Positions 14,401 through 62,182 of a stretch of DNA of 64,000 bases are shown here, piece after piece. Within the stretch, counting starts at the first letter, position 1; every line of letters starts with the position of its first letter. The translations under genes and the position numbers were made by a program. The DNA lies in assembly GCF_002113885.1 (NCBI RefSeq), contig NW_018407747.1, forward strand, positions 457,654 to 521,653. Direction: 5' to 3'. This DNA is from Mizuhopecten yessoensis (lineage: Eukaryota). Below the pieces are notes generated by a model. That model was not told the origin of the DNA. It saw only the letters and a list, made by a program, of their open reading frames with translations, and made no database searches.

Positions 14401-17400
14401 ATCTATACAACCTCTAAAGTATTATTCTTTAGCCAAATCAAGTTTGATTAAACACGAATTCAGTGATGACTTACAGATTTCTCAGTCTTGTTAATAGCCA
14501 ATTTCTATACTACTTAAAATTGTATAGCCGTGATTTATTTGAGTTATCTCCCTTACCAAGGTTTAAATAAATATGATCTACTTAAAAGAGTTATTGAAAC
14601 GTAAAAAAAAATCTATTTCTTAAAATGTTTTTAGTTAATTAATTAAGTCGAAATATAACATCCTTCACAGATATTTGACAGATTTCTTCATGTAGAACTC
14701 TTTTTGTAAAGGAGGTACATCTCACAATAAGATACCATGTACCCTTGGAGGAACCACCTTTTTTGTCTGGAGAGATAGTTTCAGACCACTGGAGTTAGGA
14801 TTACAGAGGTTCTATTGTTATTCAAATTTGACTGACAAATAACTTTACCTTGGATGAATCAAATTCCTTGGTTTCAGGTCCGATGGGCACCATGAATGGG
14901 GATTGTGGGATATCCTCCTGGTTACAGAGTACATGTACGGCATATTCACCCTCGGCCTTGGGGTAGTATGTTACGTCGGCAGAGCCGTCATTGTTGTCTC
15001 TACAATCGATCTTACACTGTGATGGACCCTCAATGGAGAACCCTAAGAAATAAAGAACGCTTTGCTATCTCAACAGGTCCTGTACAAAATCACACGTCTC
15101 CTTTCAATGATGTATTCTCTAAGCTCCTTGAACACATCTCTTTATGTAAATTCTAAAACAAATCTAGAACTTTAATACAAATATTGTTCGAATAGAACAA
15201 CAGAAGTTTTTCATTAAGGCAGAAAAGAAAGGAATTCTTACAAAAAAATATGCAAAAACCTCTAACAATACAAAACATGTATCAACAAGTGTTTTTTTTT
15301 AAAGAATCATGTTACCGAACTGTGCTATATATCAGCATATACAATATACAATTGTCTTACCAAGAGCACCAGTTTCGCCGTTAGTTTCCACGGTAAAGAC
15401 AGCTGGCTGGTTGACGACGCCTCCCTCCAGACCAGGTCCATAGGCCCTGATCTTGGACACCTTGGTGGGGCCGACTTCCACCTTGAATGGGCTCTTGGTG
15501 ATGTGTTGTTCACCAAAGGTGATGTTGATGACATACTGACCCTTAACAGTTGGTACGTAACAACACTCCCAAACACCTTCCTCCGTCTTTGACTTGACTG
15601 ATGTACACTTTAATTCTTTACCTCCTAGATAACACAGTTAAGTTACAATAGCTGTCAGGATTATACATGATTTTACTGTGGCAGAGCAGTAATGAGGGTA
15701 AATAACTGCTTTATCAACGAAATTAATTTCTTTTTCTTACCAATGTAATTATTGATTTATCACTGAAATTAATGATTTATGAACTTTAAAATATTTTATA
15801 ATGATTTAATTCAAGAACCAAAGATTCATGATTAAGTGTTACTGAAGTGAAATTACCGATTTTTAATGAACTCAAGGCAAACATCTTGCAAGTTCTGTAA
15901 AAAGCAGGGATATGTTTAAGGAATTCTTCAAAAAGTCATATATTTATCTTCAATAGTCACAGTGAATGATGTAGTCAATGTTTTAATGAATAAATGGCAT
16001 CAGAAGTTTGACCACATGATTATAAAGACCCTTTCCTTGTGGAAACAAATATCAGATATGAAAAGATATTTTTCAATTTTTCATTTACTTGAATTATATC
16101 ATAGACTTTTATAACTACGGTAATGGCAGAAAACTGGAGCATACCTGGCTGAGTAACCTGTATTTTGAGTTCAGCAGTTCCGGCGCCCTTGGTGTGCACT
16201 TTGAAGGTCGCTTGGTCCTTGACACGGACTCCGCTGGGCTGGACACCTCGTCCAGTAGCAAAGCACAGCTTTGCATTTGATGCTAAAAATAGATCAAAAT
16301 CAATTAGACCGATTCGTGATTAAAATCTTTGTTTAATCCTTAGAATATTTAACAAAAGCAAATCATATTTGAAAAAAAAATTAACAAACAAAAAACATTT
16401 AAATACAATTAACCACATATCACACAGGACAATTAAAACAAAAAGACAACACTGTATCAATTATTTTATGTTACATAGGACATAAACAACTTAAATCAAT
16501 TAACTTGATGATAATTGGTGAAAAACTATAAAAAAAAAAAAACGAATGAAATAACACGAATGAAATAACTAGAATAAAATATTCATTTGTGACAGATTTC
16601 CATGGCAACAAATTTGTTAAATGGTCTTTGTAACTGTTGACAGGAAGTTGCCCCAGTTGCCATAGCAACTGTTGTTAAGCATGATGCTACAAGTAGCTAA
16701 AACACCTAATCTTTTCCTGAAATAGCAATTTTTTTATGAATAATCGTCATGAACATACATTTTTATCTACAGTCTAGTCAATAAGCTTAACACACTGAAA
16801 GTTTTCTACAGTTTTTATGAAATGCCAGATGAAATTTCAAAATTCATTTTTTTATGTTTTTATTTATAGCGGCAATACGATAAAACTGCTCCTAACTCAA
16901 ACGCATTATCAAGTCTTGGCCATTTCACTTGTATAAAATAACTATAACTTGCAATTGGACGAGAAGCATTGAATACTAAGTTTTGAATACCTCTCAAAAT
17001 TTGAACAGTTAGCTAAAATATCTGGTAAACATTCATCCTCAAGTTCCTGCCCATTTCGACTTATTCAGGATTTATTATAAATTCATATCGTCAAAAACTA
17101 TTTAATGTATGATCATGTTCGACTTGTTTTAAAACAGCACCAAATATAGCAAATCACGCACATTCTCTTGTTAATGTTTTGACATGCCATCAAATGGCGG
17201 AGCCAGTATCCAGTGAATTTAATTCTACACGCAGAGCTACTAAGTACATCAAGTCTAACTGGTGTCAGTGGTTTTATAAAGTTTGCCTTTTCTAATCCAC
17301 TTTGTACGTAAAACATGCATGTATGTATGTATGTGCTTGCAAGACAGCGCTGAAATCTACATGAATCAATATCACTCCCAATCTTTCTTCTTTTTTTTTT

Positions 17401-20400
17401 AAATATTCAGAAAACAATTTCAAACAAATTAAAAACGGAAAATATAAAAATAAATAAATAAAAATCACACAGTATAATATTAGCACACACTTGGCTAACA
17501 ATACATAAATAAAAAAATAACTGTATCGAACAAAATAAACATTCTGTCTCCCTGACCATTCAAAATTATATATACATTCTGTAATTCATACATATAACTT
17601 ACTCTCAGCTAATTTTTCATTAGATTTCCTTTTTCAAAAACCACCCGTTGGTGTACCATTCAATTTTGTTGTTTCAATACGAAGAATTTTCAATTTCAGA
17701 ACATTTTTCAGCTTGCATGAATCAATACCAAAACAAAACTGATGTCTCAGATATTTAATCACTTTACATAATTTATTCTACAATATGCTCATTTTTAATC
17801 ACAGAATGTACATATTAACAAAACTAAAATATAAATAATATGTTAATACATTTAATATAAACTAACATGAACTGAAAGGCATATATGCGTTCAGGAGTTG
17901 AATTACTTGAAACAACATTTCCCCAAACTTGTACATACATTTGGGACATTTACTTCCGATTAGTCAATAATTATTACTTGATTGCATACATATATTATCT
18001 ACATATTGACAATTTATCAGTAATGATGATTAAAACAAACACATGGTTTCAATAGGGTCAGAAGTTTTGAAAAGGTTTTTTTTTTCTTGATCTCTAGAGA
18101 TGAAACGTTCATGTTAAAATACACTGACAGAAGAATAAAGTTTTGAAAAAATAAAAATTTCAATTCGGAAAAAAAATCCTATCAATTTTAGATAAGAAGC
18201 TTTTAAATCTCGCAGCAATAAATTATTTTCGGACTCACAAATATGCCTTTCACAAAATAACACGACACAACGTGAACGGCTTGCAAACTTTCACGTTGTT
18301 GCCAGGTTAATAGTAAAACCAGCGTCGATCACACCAGCAACTTGTATAGTTACCAGGAGCGGCCGGTTTACCCGGTGGTTGTTTACCAGCAGGCCCTTTT
18401 CCAGCTGTGAAATCAACATTTAATACGAAACTAATACACAGATTCTTCTTTCCGTTGTATGATGGATACATCTAAATGTGTATCTTTTCTATGATAGAGT
18501 GATGCAGATAAAAAATCAAAATCAAAACCAGAGGCATGATGAACTATGGAATGTAATGTATACAAAAAAAAATGACAAACAATATTGTAGTATCACAATT
18601 TACAAGTTCTGTATTAAATAGTTTAAATTAGAAAAAAATATTACATTTTGAAAAGAAATTTTACATAAGAAACTGATATTTATTACAAGCAGATATGTAG
18701 ATTATACAGACTGATTTTTAAAAAAAATATGTAGATAAAAATGTTTTCATTATTTTTTAATGTAAATAAAATGTGTAAGTGTTTAGTTACTGAACTGAAC
18801 AAAGTAACAAACATAACAAACATTGATTCTGTTAGACACAAAGAACGTCATATTTGAACAAAAGAAAAATGTATGAACTGTGTTGAACAAGAAATGAACA
18901 CGAATATCAACATGTTAATGAATGACTTGAAGCAGGACAGAACACCTTGTTGCGCACCAGTGTATGGTCCAGGGGAGATAACCTCTGATACACAGGATGG
19001 CAACAAGCTGTTGTAGATGAAATAGTCTAAAACTGACCTACACAGTCTGTCACAGTTAATTTAATTTCTCACTTTTTTAGATTGTGGACAAAACTTCCAA
19101 CTGACTTTCATATTTCTTGCTTACTCAACTCGATGAGGTATTCCAGGAGAGCACAAATATTCAAAAATAATTTTCAATTTGAAAATTGTTCAATCTTTAA
19201 AAAAATCTGGAACTTAAACCAAAATCTTGGCCAAATCTNGGTGGGGGGGTCTCCTCATCATGCATATTGTTCAAGGTTAGAATGGAAAAACTCCTTTGGA
19301 TATTTTGTTCACAATCTCAACTAGAAAACATCTGTAAGACAGAAATGACCCTGCCCCCTCCTCAACCGCTGATGTTGGTAAACTGTTGATCATGAATGTA
19401 CTGACAAAATAGTAATGGTTGACCTCTAAACAGCAACACTGACCTTGGGGTTGACCTTGGAACCCTGATATACAAATTTGTCTGAGGTATTCTCATTCCT
19501 GTACTAAGTTGCATAAACTTTGACGAAAATCTATTCAGATATAAAGCTTATATTGTCATGAAAACGACACGCAGTGGGACAGGATGCGACAGGATAGATA
19601 TGGGTAATACAACCAGCTACCCACCAAACCACCCCCCGGGAGGGAGGGAGGGAGGGAGGGTGGAAATGGGGAGGGACTTAAAAATCGGAGATACTGTACT
19701 AAATTGTGATGTACTTTATTTAACAGGTTTATCAAGACCTATTTTGTTTTACTGTGACAGTTTCAGACTAGACATCTTGTACATAGCGTTTACGAGTTAT
19801 CGACCGATCACATGACGTCTTACTACATGACATTAAGGCGCTATCAGATTGTGATGTCATAATCAAACTAGGTCTCCTGATTATTACGTCACAATTTAAA
19901 CGATTGATAACACCTCGTCATCACTAGATCGTCGTGACGACGTTTGGTGATCGGCCAATATGAAACCAAACCAACATCTTATATTTACCAGGTGCTTTGG
20001 CTGTGAATCAATGTTTTAAACAAAAATAGTAAAAAAACATCTGGACTATCACAATATTTCAACCAAAACTTGTTTATAATTTTATGTGAAAAATATTTTA
20101 TTTTTGCAAATAACAAAAAAAAAAAGTTGTAAAAAACTTGTTTGTTTCACGTATTTTTAGGAACAAATATATCAAGCATATCTTTGTTAATGTTTATTCT
20201 AAATGTGTTAATAAATTAATTATCGCCATTTATAACTGAAACTTAAACAAAACGATGTTTCAATACTGGTGACCCGGAGGTACCCTGATCACACTATCAA
20301 TGACAATGAAATTACTGGAGAAATTAATTTGAAACATATCGGGAGATAACCACACAGGGTAACTCATATTTACCAGGTGGGGCGGGACCAGGAGCGGTCT

Positions 20401-23400
20401 TGGTGCCAGCTGTGGATCGACATTTCAAACGGAAATGATCATACATTTTTACACCATTTCATGCAACAATGATTGTCAAGCACCAAATGAAGTTGTATGT
20501 AAAACACAGAACCTGTTTATCTGTCAGAACGTGTACAGATCACCCAATCACACACAATGAATTATTTATTTTTATGATTTGGTCTGTTTACAAATGTGTA
20601 CAAGCAAACTTTGTAGATCCTACATCACTGGAGTCACAAATTAACACCTATTCAAAGAAACTCAAAGGAATTCACTTTGCCCCAGATAAGGGGGACCATC
20701 CCTGTTTTCAGAATTAAATTTTGACTACGGTGGTTATAAGGAGTGATTATTTTTTTTCTTATAATTTTTCAAGATCCTGTAAGATTACAGAATGGCAATG
20801 ATGCTTATCAATTCTCTTTTATGAGGCTCAATAGAAAACCATGAAAAATTAAAAATTTCAAAAATATATATATATATATTCTGTACTCTATCTTAAAATC
20901 AGCATTTCTGAAGAAGGAACACACTAAGGGTTATCTCCCCTCCCTCATGCCGGAAAGAGAGAAGGCAGAATACAACACACAGATGACTTTCAGACTCTAC
21001 AATTGGCTTTTACACAGATAATTACCAGGAAATTTTGTACACAGGTTAAGGCAGTACAACAAGTCTGGAATGAAATATTTTTAAAAGGCGAGGCACATAG
21101 TTTATAGATGAAAAAGGTAACATCATCATCAATCTGAGGAGATACTAAGAACCCCAAGGCCACATGACAAACCAAATACTGTTGTAGCCAATTTTATTGT
21201 GATCTTGGAATTTCCATTGAATAATTCATTTAATTGTCAACTTAATAACATTTTAACTTTTGAATTACATATTCTTGTGCTTTTTGTTGACATGTGACTT
21301 GGGGTACTTGAATGTCTCCCTTTGATGTGCAAATGTATCTGTCTGGGTCGTACCTGGAGCGACTCCAACGCCGTAGGGACTGTGAGGGATCTGGTGTCCA
21401 GCGAAGTAAATGTTGACGGAGTGCTGACCAGGCTCCAGAGGCACGTATTCCACCAGGTAGGTGGCCTCCTTTCCAGCGACAGCATTAATGCTGGCTCGGA
21501 CTGTGTCCTTGCGACCATGGCTGTCCAAGATGACCACATCGACGTTACCTTTGCCGGCATCTGTAACACAGGAATAAGATGTCATCAACACCTAGGTCAT
21601 CAATAAACAAGGCCAATACCTGGCCACTTCAGTGGAGCATTTTCAACTTTTCCTATCAACAGTTACAGCTTGATACAGAAATAAATTTACAGCTCTTTTG
21701 ATATTTATATTTAATAGCTCTTTTAATATTCTTTTAATCAAATTAAGTAAGCTATATCCATGAATACTAATATTTGATGATCAATATTTTGGGAAATACT
21801 TAAATAGGATATTTAACTAGCTAGGCTGCCTGAGCTCTATGTGTAACTTGATACCAGTTCTCGTCCTTTTGTTTTACATCAAAGACTTAAATTCACAAAA
21901 TTTCCAAATATACAGAGGTTTTTTCTTAACTAAATCTTTGAATTGACATATCAATCAAAAAAATTGTTTTCAAATTCAAAATTCAAACATACACAATTTT
22001 TTCATATTGGTTAGAAAATGCTCAGGATGTTTCAGTTAATACATAATGGTAACTTGAATTGCCAAAATTGAAGTAAAATATTAAAATGATCAGATACTTA
22101 TAATAGTTAATAGAGTAATAATTTAATATGTCATTAATGTTCCCGAAGTATCATTTTTTTACCAATTGTGAGAATATATAATACAACTGTAAATGGATCA
22201 AATATTAAACTAAACACAGCATCAATCTTTCATAATGCCAACCAATAAATGGAAACTCTTGATAATTGAAAACATACATATCTACAATAAAAACACAAAT
22301 TAGTTATTGTACACAGTTTGTTAGTACCCAAACACCAGGATTTTTGTACAGCATTAAATTTACCCAGAAGGCCGAGCACAACATGGCTACACTTTATTTA
22401 CACTGCTTTGTTCACATGGAAGTGACATTCACTTACATTTTCCACAACAGTGTTACACTCACAATTTAAAACTTAACATTATTTTTGCCACACACAGTTT
22501 TTTTTGCATATCAAAATACAAATATATATTAATCAAGGTTTGTTTCAGCTGTTTCCACTTTTCTATTATTATTTTTCTGAAATAAAGGATACTGATGATT
22601 AAAATTAATTTTGACATGAATACAAAAAAAAAAATGAACAACTACATATGATTAAAAATAAGTTGAATGAGCAAATAAATATGAAAAGAAACGAAAAATG
22701 AATAGAGCAGGAACTACTGGTGAAATGATGTCTACTAAAAAAGTCAATAGCAAAAGTATATATATCAGGAGCTCTTCTGGCAAAGTTTGAATGAAAGCTA
22801 CCTAGCATTGAAATATATTTAAAACCAAGAGTTAAGGTGATTGAATGCATAAATTTCAGGCCGCACAATGGCTGAAAAGGATAATTTTGAAACTGGCTAG
22901 GAGATAAGGATTTTTTTTTTTTTGCAGTGACAACTTCACGGCGGATTACAGGAAAAAATGCACGAGAACACATTCATGGAGGTCAGTATTCGTTTGTCGA
23001 CCTATTGTTAAATTAGAGGGTGCTGTGGTAGCGTCTCCGCTGTCGTGGAGTTATTTAAGGGGAGATAATTTGTTTCAAATATCAACCAATGGGGAGGGAC
23101 AAAGAATGGGAAGATAACCCAAGGCTATAAAACACGAAAAGTTGGTGTGGACAGCAGTTGGACATTCGAGTGGACACTCGTGACATCATCATACAGGACA
23201 GTGACAAAACATGTGACATGATGTTACCATGGAAACAATGAATGACATGTGAAAAAGCAAAAACGAAAATGTCAAAATGTGCGTCAGAATCTCTTGCTAC
23301 CATTGAGAATTCATGTCTGGTTCATTATGTCATTGTGTAATTAAAGTTAACTCTGAAGGTTTATTTTTTTAAGTAAGTGTTCATAAAAACACTATTTTGA

Positions 23401-26400
23401 AGGAAATGCACAAATGGCTATATATCTATTTTACAAAATACTTGGTAAAGTTTGGTAACTTTTTTTTTCAGGAAGACAGAACCAGTTTTTAGCTTTCTAA
23501 AAATATCAGTGCAGAATACAAAACTGCGCATTTATGTAAAGAACAATTTTCAAGCAATTTCCTAGTAAAAAGATTTAGCGAAAAACATATAAAACAGACA
23601 TTTTGTCAAGAGACTGACTTCTGATGGCATATTAAGACACAGATGGACTGAATGCTCACTGAGATATCTTTAAATGAAATCCAGAAAATGTATAATCCCA
23701 CTTAATTCCATCTTGCATGGTTTTGATATTCTTGAACGTAGTTTAAGACTATCAAAAGTGCAGAATTTAATAGAAACCCTTTTTTTCATTTTCGTTTGAA
23801 ATTAAATAGGACCTTTTAAACAAAACAGGAATAAACCCTTGAAAAGATCAGTAATTCTAAAATTGAGCTTCGCCGAAACTTTAGTAAGAAATCTCAGTGA
23901 TTGATTATATGTGTGATGTTAAGTGCACTACAATAAAAATTTGACAAAATAAAGTATAAATATAAATAAATATTATACATATTTATACATATTATGAAAG
24001 AGCAAGCCCCAAAATCCCAAATAGTACACATGGAGGAAGGAAACAAATACAAACTGCTGAGAATGGTCGTAAGTGCTCCCAGTGCACATGTACTTACCCT
24101 TTCCTACCAATTTGGAGCCCCCTGCATCTGTTTATTAAAAGTGTGGAAAAAAGCAGAGGTGTGCTGAGAGCTAAATCATACTTCTAGAATAAGCCAATCA
24201 CCATTAATTTGTAAAATAAAACACAAAATACCAAAAAAAAATGAAGTTTAAGGAAGGTTTTCATTGGTCAACAGAGGTGAAAGTAACAGACGTTTTGATT
24301 GGACCATAAGTAAAACGGATCAGGAATGTTTTGATCAGCCAGTTCTGGGATTTGCACGATTGCTTTTCATTTATTATAAAGAGATTTTCCAATAGATCTT
24401 TGTGAGTTTAGCAACAACGATTGTGAATATTTCATTAAAGCCGAGGAAATAACATTCCCATGATCCGACATCTTCAATCACAAAATGCATTTCCTTTGAT
24501 CTTGAACTCAATCCCAGAATCAACGAAACTAAATTTTGTTTAAGCAATTTTATCAAAATGAAGCTTCGTAACTGACAGGAGGGATTTTAAAATCACCAGA
24601 CTATAAAATGGATGCGATACAGATGGAAAGTAGTTTTGAGGATTTAGAAACATTCAAAACATCATAAAAATTTCTTTTCATTATTCACTATAAATGTTTA
24701 ATAAAACCATATAGAAAGAAAAAACGATGGATACAATATTGCATCACATCCATGTTATTTTTTTCGCAAAGCGGATAGGCGTGCAAGCCAGTTTTGATAG
24801 GAAGGTTGCATTTGGAAATCGGGGTTAAGGATTGGTAATAACACCCTAAGTAATTGTCTAGAATCTTAAAATTTAAAATCATGTTTTTGTTTTCTTCCAC
24901 AAACAATGCATGAATGCATGGAATTTATATCTTAAAAATTATACATATTTTATTTTAAAGTTCTTTGTAAATTTATTAAAATAACTGCTGTAATTTTTTT
25001 ACGAAACAGGGATGAGGAAATGACATCTATGGTTGTCTTTCTTTAGAAGTTCAGTAAATAAGGTTTAGGATGGCAGAAGATTCAATGTTAGAGACATAAG
25101 TAATATGAAACAGAAACATCTCTGTAATTTTTCAATTAATAATAACATGGCTATAAATAAAACCGTAAACACACTTCACAACAAACAACAAACTCTAGCA
25201 AGCTGTCTGTCCAATATCAAATCTAATATACAAATACTCCTAATATTAGTACTTCACCTTCTATCGTCACATTAGCTTCTTTCTAACTAAGCAATACTTA
25301 AAAAGGTGTATCGACAAACCAGTAATCTATAGAAATAGATTATATATCAGAATGATTATACCAACCTTTACTTATCTTACCATCATCATCTATGAATATA
25401 TCAGAGGCATCGTAAACAACTAATCTATAAATGAACTATATTATTGCAGCAACCATTATTTATCTAAACATAGATCAGAGGTGTTGCATTAACAATAGCT
25501 CATCTATAAATAGATCAGAATTTCGGCATCACTAATTGATCTATAAATAGATCTACATCCTAATGTGGAACAGTCTAAACCTCTAAGAAGCCACAAGGTG
25601 TAAGGTTAGCAATGACATTTATTAACGGTTTAAAATCGTAAACTAGCATTATATCATCTTTACAAAACCACACGAGTCTGAGATGCCGAGACTAGATACC
25701 AACAAATCTGCACTAGCATTCTATAAATAACAACTCGTCATAATGCATTCACTTCTACGCTACACGGGACTCGACACTTACTCTTGGTGAACACTTCGAA
25801 ATGTGTCCTCTTTCCGGCGACCACCCCGGTCTTCTGGATTCCAGGTCCGGTGGCTGTTACCTTGGAGGCGTCGCCTGCAGCACCCTCTACCTTCACACAG
25901 AATGGACTCTTTGGGATCTCCTTCGCGCCGAATTTGATGATCACCTTCAACAAGAACATCTTCGTGTTAAACATTGAAGAGAAAGCAAAAAATAGTTGTA
26001 TTTATAAGACTGTTTGATAAAGGTCAAGTTAACAGAATTCCCTACACAGATTACGAAGGAGTACTCTAAGACAAATGCAATACATCAACTATGAAACAAC
26101 CAGTTTCTACTTTCATCGAAGGATTACACTGAAAGATTTTATTGGATTTATATTATAATTTTTTAATGGAATTCAAACTTCCCCTGCAAAACAGGAAAAG
26201 TTCAAATGCTTCAAAATCCATTTTCAACCCAAATAATTCCCGTAAAGAATGCATACTTCCTCGGAATCCCCCATAGTGGAGCACAACCTATTGGTATTGA
26301 TGATATATCACAAGCTCTGCCTCGCACAAACCTATAAAACTCCACAACACGTGTAAACCCCAACAGATTTCAGGTCCTTTTTATATGTTCCTATCAACTC

Positions 26401-59400: not shown

Positions 59401-62182
59401 GTGTCCACTGTTATGATCAAATGTGAATTTGAGACTTCGATGTAAGAAAACACTGATCTTTCAGATTAAGAAAGAAAACAGCACAGCAAACTCAGTTGTT
59501 TAAATATCAACACAAACCCATAACCAATTAATTCACTTTTATGAACAAATGTAATCATTTGAGTTTCTAAAGAAATGTCTGTGTTTTGAATGACAGCAAA
59601 ACTACTTAAACTTACATATGGCCCATATGTGCACGTCATGAAAAACATAACTGCTGACATTCCGGTAAATCTCGTTAATCACCTGTATGAACGTTGACAA
59701 GCATGATATATGTCTAAGTTTTCATACAGGTAACAAATCATCCTTTACAAGTTCTTCACTTGTGATGTGTCATCTTATACATTTAATTACAATTTCGATA
59801 TTGGTTTAACTGTCCCTTAAGTTGAAGCATAAACAAAGCATGAAATAAGCCAAGTAGGTCATCCCATATTCTCCGACTCAAAGAGGCGGGGAGAGATTTT
59901 GAACATGTACATCCCCTATAAATTTTGACATTCTGCCTATATAGAATTGAACAACTATTTTGCCCACCCCCTCCCACACAATTCTCAATAAAACACTACA
60001 TTACAATTTGTAAGCATTGTCTATGAACTGCAATAGACAATAGCGGGCTTATTACCAGGCATGGGCTTATTTCTGGATAAGTACAGGGTACATAAACTTG
60101 ATTGCAGTGTAAAAGATAACCGATCATACATTATCCAATTTTATTAGGAAAATATGGGAATTTTGCTTCGTTATCTTAACATTACTGAAGATTAATATCG
60201 CTGAATTCTAACAATGTTCTTTCGGTAAGTGAACTGTTATACATGTAGGTAAGGTAGCCTTACAAGAATCATGGTAAAACTTTTGAAAATCTCATGAAAA
60301 CATGCATCAGTTGAAAGGTGCATTATACACATTTCTATTCCCCCAGACATAGTCATTGATGTCAATGTGTACACCACAGTCATACAAATTTTATCTCCCT
60401 AAAGGTCACAGATTCAGCAATTTGTTGTTTCATTTTCAACTTTGACATTTCATTTGTGCAAAATGAAATATACATGAGCATAAGGGGTTTTTACATATAT
60501 ATAAATATACAAATAAAAACTAGAGTTTTGTTTATAGCCAGACTTGAAACTCTGCCAAAAATTAAACGACAAACTCGAACAATACATAACTTGCTGGTAC
60601 ATAACACATTTGTGTTTTATAAAAATTTCTTGTGTCGACTAAAGTATTGTAGTACTTAACAAACATGTTACCAATTTATCACAAATCAGGGTTGACAGAC
60701 TTAAATACAAATTCTGTTATAACCTAGCAACTTTATGCAACTTTCAATTGGTTTAAACAATTTTGTGTGGATAGTAATGTCAGTATATTCACGACCCACC
60801 CCCTCACTTCACCAACTTTGAGATAAAATTTAACCCTGCAATTTGGGGGACACACCCATTTCAAATCTGACCTCAATATCATTCGCAGTGATAAGGTTTC
60901 TTGCAAGGTTGTAGGGAAAAAAAGACATTAACAAAAAAATATAATTAGGATTGTTTTGTTGAAGAGTTTTCATTAATTTAACAAAAAATCTTTGTATATA
61001 TTGTAATGAATTCATCAAAATTAACAAAAGCTATTATTAATGCAACTTATATAAACTGCTTAAAAAACAACTACACAATGATGGGGCAAAAAATGACTCT
61101 TTAAATGACAATTTTAATTTAGACACCTTTTGGAAGTTGAAGATAGTTTGAGCGGGATCTAACTGACATTAGTCTGGTGCAGAGGAACAAGGCCTTGTAC
61201 CAGAAACAAATTGCTAAATTAATTTACTGTTCATCATTAGAAGAACTGTCCCTCTCCCACAATTTCTGCTAATGTGATAACTGCTTCCATATGATGGGTC
61301 CAATACACATGTGTATTCAGGTATTACCCTACTAGTAGTCTGATGGCCAGTGGCTAAAACGGGTCAGTAATGTGGGTTGCAGAAATCTCGGACCGAATCT
61401 TATCCGAAATTATTTTAATGTTTTTCATTTCAGCAAGAAAAAACAATTGGAGTTTAGAATGTCAATAATGTGCAAATTGGGAGGCGATCGATGATTTTAC
61501 ACTGTTACAATACACAATCGACGGAAGCCATGTTTGTTTATATATTTCGCCACACGTGTGTACTGCAACAGGTAAACTATGAACGGTTCCATTACTGTCA
61601 CTATGAATAGACACACATTAAAAACGGGGTTTTTCTAGAGAAATTAAATCGAACTTATGACAGGAGATCTCTGCTGGACCGGAATAGGCGTTCTCACCTG
61701 AAGCAGGTAAAATATGCTAAGGTATTTCACTCAACCATCGTGACCTCTTCAGTCGGTCACGCCCGAATTCCGACGTGTGTGCATGTGAATACAACTGATT
61801 GTATCTGTCATAAATAATATAAAATAAAATTAAGACACTTACCGATGTTGACGATCCTGATCCCCTCATCCTTCTCCAGGAACTCCAAAACCATGGTAAC
61901 ATTTTCAAGTTTCTGTGTTCTGAAGTTGGGCCTCTTGTTGATTTTTTTAAATTGCTTGCCGGAAAGCACTTCAATTAGCGATATTAAACGTAATCCATCG
62001 CTAAGATCGGCTTCTAGGTCGTTTAAAACCTTATTTACCGTTTTCAGGTGTTCATTAGCCCACCTGGAGAAGGTGTTTTTCTGGATAAGCTTCCATTGAG
62101 CGTCGTCCGCTAAATCTCTCTCTGTTGCCGGCATCTCCTCTTCCTCGTCCTCGTCATAAAACTGTGCCTCGCTTTCATCCAT
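2188..62182 (-). CDS. FLNA: Filamin (FLNA/cheerio family), multi-exon gene, 3'-incomplete in window; span of resolved coding exons
   Basis: 23 GT-AG exons join in frame (5709 nt). N-terminal CH domains ([47 protein letters not shown]) are followed by 17 Ig repeats with YGPGL...SPF motifs. Confidence 0.97.
2499..2690. mobile_element. Degenerate MITE-like remnant
   Basis: TACAGTCAAA-type terminus with internal inverted GAGACCATT/AATGGTCTC. Confidence 0.3.
2857..3046 (-). CDS. FLNA: Filamin exon 22 (Ig14-like)
   Basis: [21 protein letters not shown]...[21 protein letters not shown]; 190 nt. Confidence 0.94.
4380..5322. repeat. 41-bp minisatellite, 23 copies, intronic
   Basis: Unit GAATTAACCCCTTTCCCTGGCAGAAAGATGGACCAGTGATA repeated head to tail with few substitutions. 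Confidence 0.97.
5772..5925 (-). CDS. FLNA: Filamin exon 21 (Ig14-like)
   Basis: [52 protein letters not shown]; 154 nt, phase 2-0. Confidence 0.93.
6222..6345 (-). CDS. FLNA: Filamin exon 20 (Ig13-like)
   Basis: [41 protein letters not shown]; 124 nt, phase 1-2. Confidence 0.92.
6563..6733 (-). CDS. FLNA: Filamin exon 19 (Ig13-like)
   Basis: [24 protein letters not shown]...TYTDNQ; 171 nt. Confidence 0.93.
7192..7515 (-). CDS. FLNA: Filamin exon 18 (Ig11/Ig12-like)
   Basis: [19 protein letters not shown]...FADQPIP; 324 nt. Confidence 0.94.
8155..8328 (-). CDS. FLNA: Filamin exon 17 (Ig11-like)
   Basis: [15 protein letters not shown]...YTPEEQ; 174 nt. Confidence 0.93.
10249..10281 (-). 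CDS. Candidate 33-nt cassette microexon in the Ig11-like repeat ([11 protein letters not shown])
   Basis: Long pyrimidine tract TTTTCCTTCTTTTTTCTTACTATTTAGACTTTCAG; donor A|GTAAAT; phase 1-1; TGCATG about 30 nt downstream. Confidence 0.45.
   Translation of the reverse strand, partial: VVCSAWEMGE
10588..11166 (-). CDS. FLNA: Filamin exon 16 (Ig8+Ig9-like pair, copy 3, running into the Ig11-like repeat)
   Basis: [11 protein letters not shown]...[15 protein letters not shown]; 579 nt, phase 1-1. Confidence 0.94.
11350..11919 (-). CDS. FLNA: Filamin exon 15 (Ig8+Ig9-like pair, copy 2)
   Basis: [11 protein letters not shown]...KVNVLGLDK; 570 nt, phase 1-1. Confidence 0.94.
12095..12664 (-). CDS. 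FLNA: Filamin exon 14 (Ig8+Ig9-like pair, copy 1)
   Basis: [11 protein letters not shown]...KVKVVGLDK; 570 nt, phase 1-1. Confidence 0.94.
13102..13326 (-). CDS. FLNA: Filamin exon 13 (Ig6)
   Basis: [12 protein letters not shown]...[26 protein letters not shown]; donor C|GTAAGT; 225 nt. Confidence 0.94.
13512..13632 (-). CDS. FLNA: Filamin exon 12 (Ig6)
   Basis: [40 protein letters not shown]; donor GTGAGG; 121 nt. Confidence 0.93.
13845..14160. repeat. About 92-94 bp tandem repeat derived from the 3' end and donor of exon 11
   Basis: Unit GGTGTTGTATTTACT(A/T)GTGACC..ACT(C/T)ACCCTGAA.GGACTGTTGGGGATCTGTACTCCTCC occurs three times; donor-like sites at 14077, 13983 and 13891. Confidence 0.9.
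14077..14334 (-). CDS. FLNA: Filamin exon 11 (Ig5)
   Basis: [12 protein letters not shown]...[12 protein letters not shown]; donor AGG|GTGAGT; 258 nt. Confidence 0.92.
14849..15042 (-). CDS. FLNA: Filamin exon 10 (Ig4)
   Basis: [28 protein letters not shown]...PQSPF...DSSK; 194 nt. Confidence 0.93.
15361..15624 (-). CDS. FLNA: Filamin exon 9 (Ig3/Ig4)
   Basis: GGKELKC...[10 protein letters not shown]...[30 protein letters not shown]; donor GTAAGA; 264 nt. Confidence 0.93.
16145..16282 (-). CDS. FLNA: Filamin exon 8 (Ig3)
   Basis: [46 protein letters not shown]; 138 nt, phase 1-1. Confidence 0.93.
16596..16669. promoter_or_regulatory. Paired RFX X-box-like motifs
   Basis: GTTGCCATAGCAAC (16656-16669) and ATTTCCATGGCAAC (16596-16609). 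Confidence 0.5.
18354..18404 (-). CDS. 51-nt microexon, Ig2-Ig3 linker ([17 protein letters not shown])
   Basis: GTTGATTTCACAG|CTGGAAAAGGG...GCTCCTG|GTAACT; phase 1-1; two internal in-frame GTAAAC donors. Confidence 0.8.
19319..19684 (+). mobile_element. Degenerate non-autonomous element resembling bivalve Helentron-associated (HINE/pearl-type) repeats
   Basis: AACTAGA start, TGACCTT motifs, GACAGG-like micro-repeat, terminal C-run/G-run palindrome followed by an A-run. Confidence 0.4.
19989..20000 (-). CDS. 12-nt microexon, Ig2-Ig3 linker (AKAP)
   Basis: ATTGATTCACAG|CCAAAGCACCTG|GTAAATATAAG; flanks resemble those of the neighbouring microexons. Confidence 0.72.
20374..20409 (-). CDS. 36-nt microexon, Ig2-Ig3 linker ([12 protein letters not shown])
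   Basis: GATCCACAG|CTGGCACC...CCACCTG|GTAAATATGAG; GC-rich island in an AT-rich intron; phase 1-1. Confidence 0.8.
21354..21560 (-). CDS. FLNA: Filamin exon 7 (Ig2)
   Basis: [13 protein letters not shown]...[12 protein letters not shown]; donor G|GTACGA; 207 nt, phase 1-1. Confidence 0.94.
23223..23236. promoter_or_regulatory. RFX X-box motif
   Basis: GTTACCATGGAAAC matches the GTNNCCATRGNAAC X-box consensus. Confidence 0.45.
24098..24127 (-). CDS. Candidate 30-nt cassette microexon in Ig2 ([10 protein letters not shown])
   Basis: TTTTAATAAACAG|ATGCAGGGGGCTCCAAATTGGTAGGAAAGG|GTAAGT; phase 1-1, no stop. Confidence 0.6.
25782..25944 (-). CDS. FLNA: Filamin exon 6 (Ig1/Ig2)
   Basis: [15 protein letters not shown]...[16 protein letters not shown]...EVFTK; donor A|GTAAGT; 163 nt. 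Confidence 0.94.
26972..27046 (+). mobile_element. tRNA-derived SINE-like head or degenerate tRNA pseudogene
   Basis: Pol III A box TAGCTCAGTCGG and B box GGTTCAAATCC at tRNA spacing; acceptor and anticodon stems do not pair. Confidence 0.6.
27269..27346 (-). CDS. FLNA: Filamin exon 5 (Ig1)
   Basis: [26 protein letters not shown]; AG...GTAAGT; 78 nt. Confidence 0.92.
27604..27870 (-). CDS. FLNA: Filamin exon 4 (end of CH2, start of Ig1)
   Basis: [25 protein letters not shown]...[13 protein letters not shown]...KEP; donor GTAAGT; 267 nt. Confidence 0.95.
29980..30077 (-). CDS. FLNA: Filamin exon 3 (CH2)
   Basis: [33 protein letters not shown]; donor CAG|GTGGGT; 98 nt; absent from the ORF track. 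Confidence 0.93.
31418..31669 (-). CDS. FLNA: Filamin exon 2 (end of CH1, start of CH2)
   Basis: TTTTGCAG|AC...; [24 protein letters not shown]...ALVDAVGP; donor G|GTGCGT; 252 nt, phase 1-1. Confidence 0.95.
50934..50997. repeat. Short tandem repeat of CTCTATTATCTGACT(CGG), about 4 copies
   Basis: Directly visible in the sequence. Confidence 0.85.
53392..53449. repeat. 28-bp tandem duplication
   Basis: CACCCCTACCTTTTCTCTTTAGGCTTGA occurs twice. Confidence 0.85.
57380..57610. mobile_element. Degenerate MITE-like remnant with internal sub-repeats
   Basis: Repeated GTC(C/T)(A/G)G(A/T)TTATACAGGGTT and AGAAATG(T/C)ACAGTGGGA motifs. Confidence 0.3.
61843..62182 (-). CDS. FLNA: Filamin coding exon 1 (acidic N-terminus, CH1)
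   Basis: Kozak CCAACCATGG; [12 protein letters not shown]...GIRIVNI; donor G|GTAAGT; 340 nt, ends phase 1. Confidence 0.96.

Follow-up and report, generated by a model that had tools for sequence, protein, structure and literature searches.

Three in-frame mini-exons encode an optional, predicted disordered linker between Ig2 and Ig3 of a scallop filamin

Are three short, stop-free segments in a filamin intron real exons and, if so, what would they add to the protein? The question is raised by the window analysed here, a stretch of 64,000 nucleotides from the Yesso scallop Mizuhopecten yessoensis (contig NW_018407747.1, positions 457,654 to 521,653) that consists of AT-rich animal DNA and whose minus-strand stop-free stretches encode filamin. 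The exons that carry most of the second immunoglobulin-like repeat (Ig2) and the start of the third (Ig3), hereafter exons 7 and 8, are separated in this gene by an intron of 5,071 nt with a GC content of 32%. An initial annotation, made from the DNA letters, had placed three cassettes in this intron, and their coordinates, lengths, phases and peptides prove to be exact on the minus strand. In transcriptional order, and in window positions, they are:

20374..20409, minus strand: mini-exon A, a 36-nt phase 1-1 cassette encoding 12 residues (sequence; RefSeq isoforms X1, X2, X4, X8 and X9; RNA depth; Argopecten ortholog).
19989..20000, minus strand: microexon B, a 12-nt phase 1-1 cassette encoding AKAP (sequence; RefSeq isoforms X1, X4, X5 and X8; Argopecten ortholog).
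18354..18404, minus strand: mini-exon C, a 51-nt phase 1-1 cassette encoding 17 residues (junction reads; RefSeq isoforms X1, X2, X4, X5, X6 and X8; Argopecten and Ylistrum orthologs).

All three combine a CACAG acceptor with a CCTG/GTAA donor (slashes mark exon borders) and a phase that fits exons 7 and 8, the borders reading cacag/CTGGCACC...CCACCTG/gtaaat for A, cacag/CCAAAGCACCTG/gtaaat for B and cacag/CTGGAAAAGG...GCTCCTG/gtaact for C. Because each is in phase 1-1 and a multiple of three in length, any subset of them keeps the frame. A mechanical count finds 286 frame-preserving, stop-free AG..GT candidates in the same intron, so that this property alone proves nothing; A, B and C are set apart by their high GC content (58-72%, making them GC-rich islands in the host intron), by common upstream flanks, by junction reads to C, by their presence in RefSeq and by orthologs in other scallops, while the other 283 candidates are found in none of the isoforms inspected. 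That the three are chance open stretches rather than exons, an idea that draws on how common short stop-free AG..GT segments are, is refuted by the C junction reads, the exact RefSeq matches of all three and the Argopecten orthologs, and its probability is negligible. The observation of three mini-exons is confirmed. The accompanying remark that they are missed by the open reading frame track holds for the open reading frame lists and for the GenBank model OWF45693 but not for NCBI RefSeq, where isoforms X1-X15 are annotated; the existence of the exons, being already part of those isoform models, is not new.

How often the exons are used was addressed with RNA runs. A search with exon-rich window DNA led to DNA-like sequence sets, to RNA-like sets whose word shares approached the exonic share, and to four raw RNA-seq runs; two raw runs (X21 and X24) and two contig sets (runs X6 and X11) were aligned to positions 16000-21700. 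The runs bear coded tissue labels, and three reads were the threshold of the joint table. The joint 21354>16282, which skips all three exons, is present in four of four runs (7 reads in run X21, 11 in run X24, and the dominant contigs of runs X6 and X11). Junction reads, sought as a check on the initial annotation, are present for exon C in run X24, where it is joined to exon 7 by 21354>18404 (4 reads, 3 start sites) and to exon 8 by 18354>16282 (9 reads, 6 start sites), both GT..AG on the minus strand, for an inclusion of roughly 40%. Exon C is in none of the seven reads of run X21, and the difference between the two samples is suggestive only (Fisher p = 0.06). Two nested in-frame donors in exon C, at 18387 and 18372, were rejected, as all nine C-exon 8 reads use 18354 and no isoform carries a shortened C. 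For exon A, the depth in run X21 amounts to exactly 19 + 17 nt in two straddling bins, one read's worth, and that in run X24 to about three reads' worth, with adjoining intron bins at zero on that strand; this depth points to a few spliced reads through A, below the threshold of the joint table.

Two further signals of the intron were set aside. A fourth exon was rejected, since the GC-rich candidates for it, among them 19676..19614 within a GGGA repeat, are without an isoform or spliced reads. At 19577-20005, around a low-complexity (GGGA)n run at 19640-19660, there are unspliced contigs of low depth and two reads; they have no spliced overlap with exon B and are probably derived from pre-mRNA or from the repeat.

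The combinations in which the exons occur were read from RefSeq. An oyster ortholog (P0004), found with the exon 7 product, served in a region-limited search for mollusc filamins, and in each isoform the residues that separate Ig2 from Ig3 were extracted as the hinge. Those of M. yessoensis agree with the window exons letter for letter:

Isoforms X1, X4, X8 and X15: A+B+C, 33 residues.
Isoform X2: A+C, 29 residues.
Isoform X5: B+C, 21 residues.
Isoform X6: C, 17 residues.
Isoform X9: A, 12 residues.
Isoform X11 and GenBank OWF45693: no insert, 0 residues.

The combinatorial inclusion proposed in the initial annotation is thereby borne out, with six of the eight possible combinations in M. yessoensis RefSeq and four in Argopecten, next to the differing use of exon C in runs X24 and X21. 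Since RefSeq computes its isoforms on the basis of transcripts, each of their junctions is likely to be supported. A search for short transcript fragments spanning Ig2, hinge and Ig3 (query P0275:400-600) returned three partial matches, all of which leave the hinge uncovered.

Are the exons older than this one species? In Argopecten irradians the hinge consists of AGTKVAPGAAPPP (the A ortholog), VGKAP (B) and a 19-residue segment (C), and its isoforms contain ABC, AC, C or none of them, VGKAP being the sole hinge difference between isoforms X1 and X2. Isoform X3 of Ylistrum balloti carries C alone (VGKGPAAKQPPGKQPAP). Conservation in relatives, named as a check in the initial annotation, is therefore found for all three exons in Argopecten and for C in Ylistrum. 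Between Mizuhopecten and Argopecten the orthologous peptides are identical at 10 of 13 positions in A, 3 of 5 in B and 15 of 19 in C; exon lengths shift from one genus to the other (12/13, 4/5 and 17/19 residues), and the full inserts of both have five lysines and zero acidic residues. No Ig2/Ig3 insert is present in 79 isoforms of mussels, oysters, unionids and gastropods (28 from non-scallop molluscs and 51 oyster, mussel or unionid cluster members), and the gap at the Ig2/Ig3 junction is directly visible when the scallop proteins are aligned with non-scallop relatives. A hinge-only search with residues 466-525 of isoform X1, a word-based and length-filtered comparison with 5.8 billion clusters, returned only scallop filamins. 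Among the molluscs sampled, the exon array looks like an innovation of the Pectinidae.

The three exons also resemble one another outside their coding parts, in an upstream element (...GTTTnAAAtGTtGATtCACAG) and at the exon ends. The flanks compared are:

20410..20441, minus strand: upstream intronic flank of A (...GTTTGAAATGTCGATCCACAG), aligned with pairwise scores of 12-15.
20001..20032, minus strand: upstream intronic flank of B (...GTTTAAAACATTGATTCACAG), aligned with pairwise scores.
18405..18436, minus strand: upstream intronic flank of C (...GTATTAAATGTTGATTTCACAG), aligned with pairwise scores.

The three pairs of 32-nt flanks score 12, 13 and 15, against a null of 3.3 +/- 1.8 built from the 32 nt that precede all other CAG sites in the introns of the same gene (p <= 0.001 for every pair). 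Downstream similarity beyond the GTAA anchor is not significant (p 0.1-0.2). Of the duplication origin put forward in the initial annotation, the upstream flanks thus sustain the idea itself, but the likeness claimed for the donor side does not reach significance; that the three exons arose by local duplication is supported by these alignments. A transposon origin was rejected because A and C, flanks included, occur once in the 987.6-Mb genome (82,659 contigs). As A, B and C are all in Argopecten too, the duplications would predate the split of the two genera, and since the upstream likeness has outlasted that split, a shared element under constraint is suggested. This common motif of about 30 nt is probably an acceptor, regulatory or branch-site element. 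The acceptors are weak and are without a pyrimidine tract, pyrimidines accounting for 55% of the 20 nt ahead of CAG. TGC, the DNA form of the UGC motif, does not occur in the 55 nt that precede each of the three exons. A single TGCATG, an Rbfox-type hexamer, lies at about 20465 on the minus strand, some 56 nt upstream of A, and none is near B or C; one such hexamer is within chance expectation, and Rbfox-type control was rejected.

Could the array be tolerated splicing noise, that is, weak cryptic in-frame exons with low, unregulated inclusion and no selected function? Contig runs X6 and X11 and raw run X21 show essentially skipping only, in-frame AG..GT candidates abound in the intron and the peptide is of low complexity, all of which would be expected of noise. 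Yet A, B and C keep the same order and phase in Argopecten, as does C in Ylistrum, with peptides 60-80% identical and the charge retained, and the exons stand out as GC-rich islands with common upstream flanks from candidates that no isoform uses. This conservation and the roughly 40% inclusion of C in run X24 make pure noise quite unlikely.

What would the exons add? The insert falls exactly between the end of Ig2 (SPYGVGVAP) and the start of Ig3 (ASNAK), two Ig repeats from the actin-binding domain (ABD), and consists to 91% of Pro, Ala, Gly and Lys, with a net charge of up to +5 and no acidic residue. In an AlphaFold2 prediction for Ig2-hinge-Ig3 of isoform X1, made with a 12-sequence alignment, the predicted local distance difference test score (pLDDT) is below 50 and secondary structure is absent at fragment residues 119-148 (the 33-residue insert being located at about 115-147), and the flanking Ig folds both form blocks with a pLDDT of 80-95. 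Composition and model fit a disordered linker, in keeping with the 0-33-residue Pro/Ala/Gly/Lys linker that the initial annotation had envisaged between the two repeats. Splicing gives either a direct Ig2-Ig3 junction (VAP-ASNAK) or 4 to 33 linker residues and would in this way determine how long and how flexible the arm is between the ABD with Ig1-2 and the rest of rod 1. Taking about 0.3 nm for each residue, the full insert of 33 could extend this arm by as much as about 10 nm, which exceeds the length of two Ig repeats. The probable explanation of the locus is that duplicated in-frame cassettes provide a graded unstructured hinge, which would tune the length and flexibility of the actin-binding arm; the initial interpretation is, overall, supported.

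The same composition could indicate that the insert is mainly a binding module and not a passive spacer, in contact with actin or presenting spliced-in ligands for SH3 or WW domains. In myosin essential light chains, extensions rich in Ala, Pro and Lys contact acidic F-actin, as does the titin PEVK region, and the scallop insert, two repeats away from the ABD, has a charge of +5 and zero acidic residues, both conserved between Mizuhopecten and Argopecten. The A-B junction moreover spells PAPPAK (PxxPxK), and exon C contains KQPPGKP (KxxPxxP), the one class I-like match and a site of the kind that the initial annotation had suggested under the heading of PxxP motifs. But KxxPxxP is lost in Argopecten and Ylistrum (KQPPGKQ), which leaves the PxxP idea weak; chance proline motifs are expected in a sequence with 30% proline, and the drifting exon lengths are easier to reconcile with a spacer than with a fixed docking site. 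A binding module is on balance an unlikely main role for the insert.

Several points weigh against a graded hinge. Read counts are small, and the contrast in exon C between runs X24 and X21 is suggestive at p = 0.06; the contig runs show the skipped form only, and inclusion may be minor in many tissues. Exon B is supported by isoform models, its 12 nt being too short for read placement. The RefSeq models are computed, and long-range exon combinations on single molecules are not proven by them. The conservation of the exons across species is read from protein isoforms, and that of the intronic motif would follow from M. yessoensis DNA combined with scallop protein isoforms. Lastly, the peptide is of low complexity and its length drifts between genera, as it would in loosely constrained sequence.

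A further cassette of the same gene lies upstream, between exons 6 and 7:

24098-24127, minus strand: microexon, a 30-nt phase 1-1 cassette, acag/ATGCAGGGGGCTCCAAATTGGTAGGAAAGG/gtaagt.

It adds AGGSKLVGK to a loop of Ig2, where the AlphaFold2 pLDDT is low. All nine listed exon 7 acceptor reads of run X21 carry this microexon, and in run X24 (4 listed reads) and in the contigs of runs X6 and X11 exon 6 is spliced directly to exon 7, so that its use looks switch-like between samples. It is present in eight of eight M. yessoensis RefSeq isoforms inspected, missing from GenBank OWF45693 and optional in Argopecten. Like the hinge exons it is a phase 1-1 cassette of the filamin gene that adds unstructured residues; unlike them it modifies a loop within Ig2, at a site that is used in oysters, mussels, unionids and scallops, whereas the Ig2/Ig3 array was found in scallops alone. 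Across bivalves the exon 6/7 site is a hot spot of alternative splicing (proteins P0283-P0352; columns 76-128 of alignment A2), at which oysters add AVPAELLSDID and/or AVKIVVAPGKK(D/E), mussels SGAPIPKKE, and the unionid Sinanodonta about 50 extra residues in which GQASTQTKVAPGT units recur. TKVAPG, a motif of the Sinanodonta insert, recalls exon A of the scallop hinge (AGTKVAPG in Argopecten), a likeness that may reflect low-complexity convergence or a shared origin.

The exons that frame the array belong to a series of filamin Ig-repeat exons extending from a calponin-homology (CH)-bearing first coding exon down to the window start:

about 62182..61850, minus strand: first coding exon, matching Pfam CH (E 2.2e-13), the N-terminal calponin-homology domain.
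21354..21560, minus strand: exon 7, constitutive, encoding the C-terminal two thirds of Ig2 (contig pieces and joints; Pfam Filamin, E 2.5e-10).
16145..16282, minus strand: exon 8, constitutive, encoding the start of Ig3 (joint 16282>21354 in four of four runs; contig pieces 16144-16282; Pfam Filamin).

Exon 7 terminates in phase 1 with GTC GCT CCA G/gtacg (...GVGVAP + G), and exon 8 opens with ag/CA TCA AAT at 16282; their products cover positions 40-92 and 3-46 of the Pfam Filamin profile, respectively, that of exon 8 scoring 25.1 bits by itself against a cut-off of 26.9. Reads and contigs, with loose ends, put the 3' end of exon 8 at 16145 (CCAG/gtatgc), 13 nt past the first GT at 16157 (CAG/gttact). 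Both exons are 100% identical to M. yessoensis proteins, among them filamin P0172, 'Filamin-A [Mizuhopecten yessoensis]' and the 'filamin-A-like' isoforms of RefSeq. The search with the exon 7 product returned mostly single-exon gene calls that run into the intron, which confirms the exon boundary but says nothing about the hinge. Database searches used exon products one at a time, and joined sequences came from database proteins only; the single N lies at 19239.

How does the scallop hinge compare with known systems? Two hinges are known in vertebrate filamins, one of which is spliced. In vertebrate FLNB and FLNC, hinge 1 (Ig15/Ig16) is a cassette exon that is removed during myogenesis (PMC7216277). 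The scallop insert shares with it the character of a non-Ig, proline-rich, flexible segment between Ig repeats, separate from the repeat exons and subject to frame-neutral alternative splicing, and the Pro/Gln/Ala-rich hinge 1 of sheep FLNA offers a further likeness. It differs in being located at Ig2/Ig3, near the actin-binding end, rather than at Ig15/16, and is not the ortholog of hinge 1; it is built from three duplicated exons that give a graded 0 to 33 residues instead of one on/off exon, and it is basic, Lys-rich and, among the molluscs sampled, confined to scallops. In titin PEVK, short exons duplicated in tandem are differentially spliced to set spring length. The scallop array likewise combines duplicated short exons of one phase, Pro/Lys-rich disorder and length by exon choice, but it has three exons against over a hundred and, in M. 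yessoensis, is free of Glu and Val. Animal microexons, finally, measure 3-27 nt, or as much as 51 nt if defined more widely, and are often neural and dependent on SRRM4/eMIC. They too are very short in-frame cassettes with weak acceptors, and the handful of residues that they encode is placed at the border of a domain or in a surface loop; of the scallop exons, B measures 12 nt, A and C, with 36 and 51 nt, lie above 27 nt, and the upstream UGC of SRRM4/eMIC microexons is absent.

No description of the Ig2/Ig3 hinge was found in the literature on filamin microexons, scallop filamin or invertebrate filamin hinges. Proteomics of scallop muscle revealed discordant filamin mRNA and protein levels in catch versus striated muscle and suggested posttranscriptional regulation, without isoform detail (PMC5963113). 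The scallop hinge is a modest variant of a known spliced filamin hinge, and its value is limited in that RefSeq already has the exons, that they appear to be confined to scallops and that the function proposed here is an inference.

Going beyond a graded hinge, the array might work as a three-bit dial with up to eight states between 0 and 33 residues, controlled through the shared upstream element and set differently from tissue to tissue, so as to adjust actin cross-linking in its geometry or stiffness; this extension is tentative and, as it stands, doubtful. If it were true, settings may differ, for example, between fast striated and catch adductor muscle or haemocytes, and cross-links would be tuned in a lineage noted for its swimming, which is driven by rapid adduction. 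More generally, filamin mechanics hinge on where the rod bends, and the scallop array would offer both a compact case of microexons duplicated together with their acceptor region and a natural experiment on neck length versus cross-link geometry.

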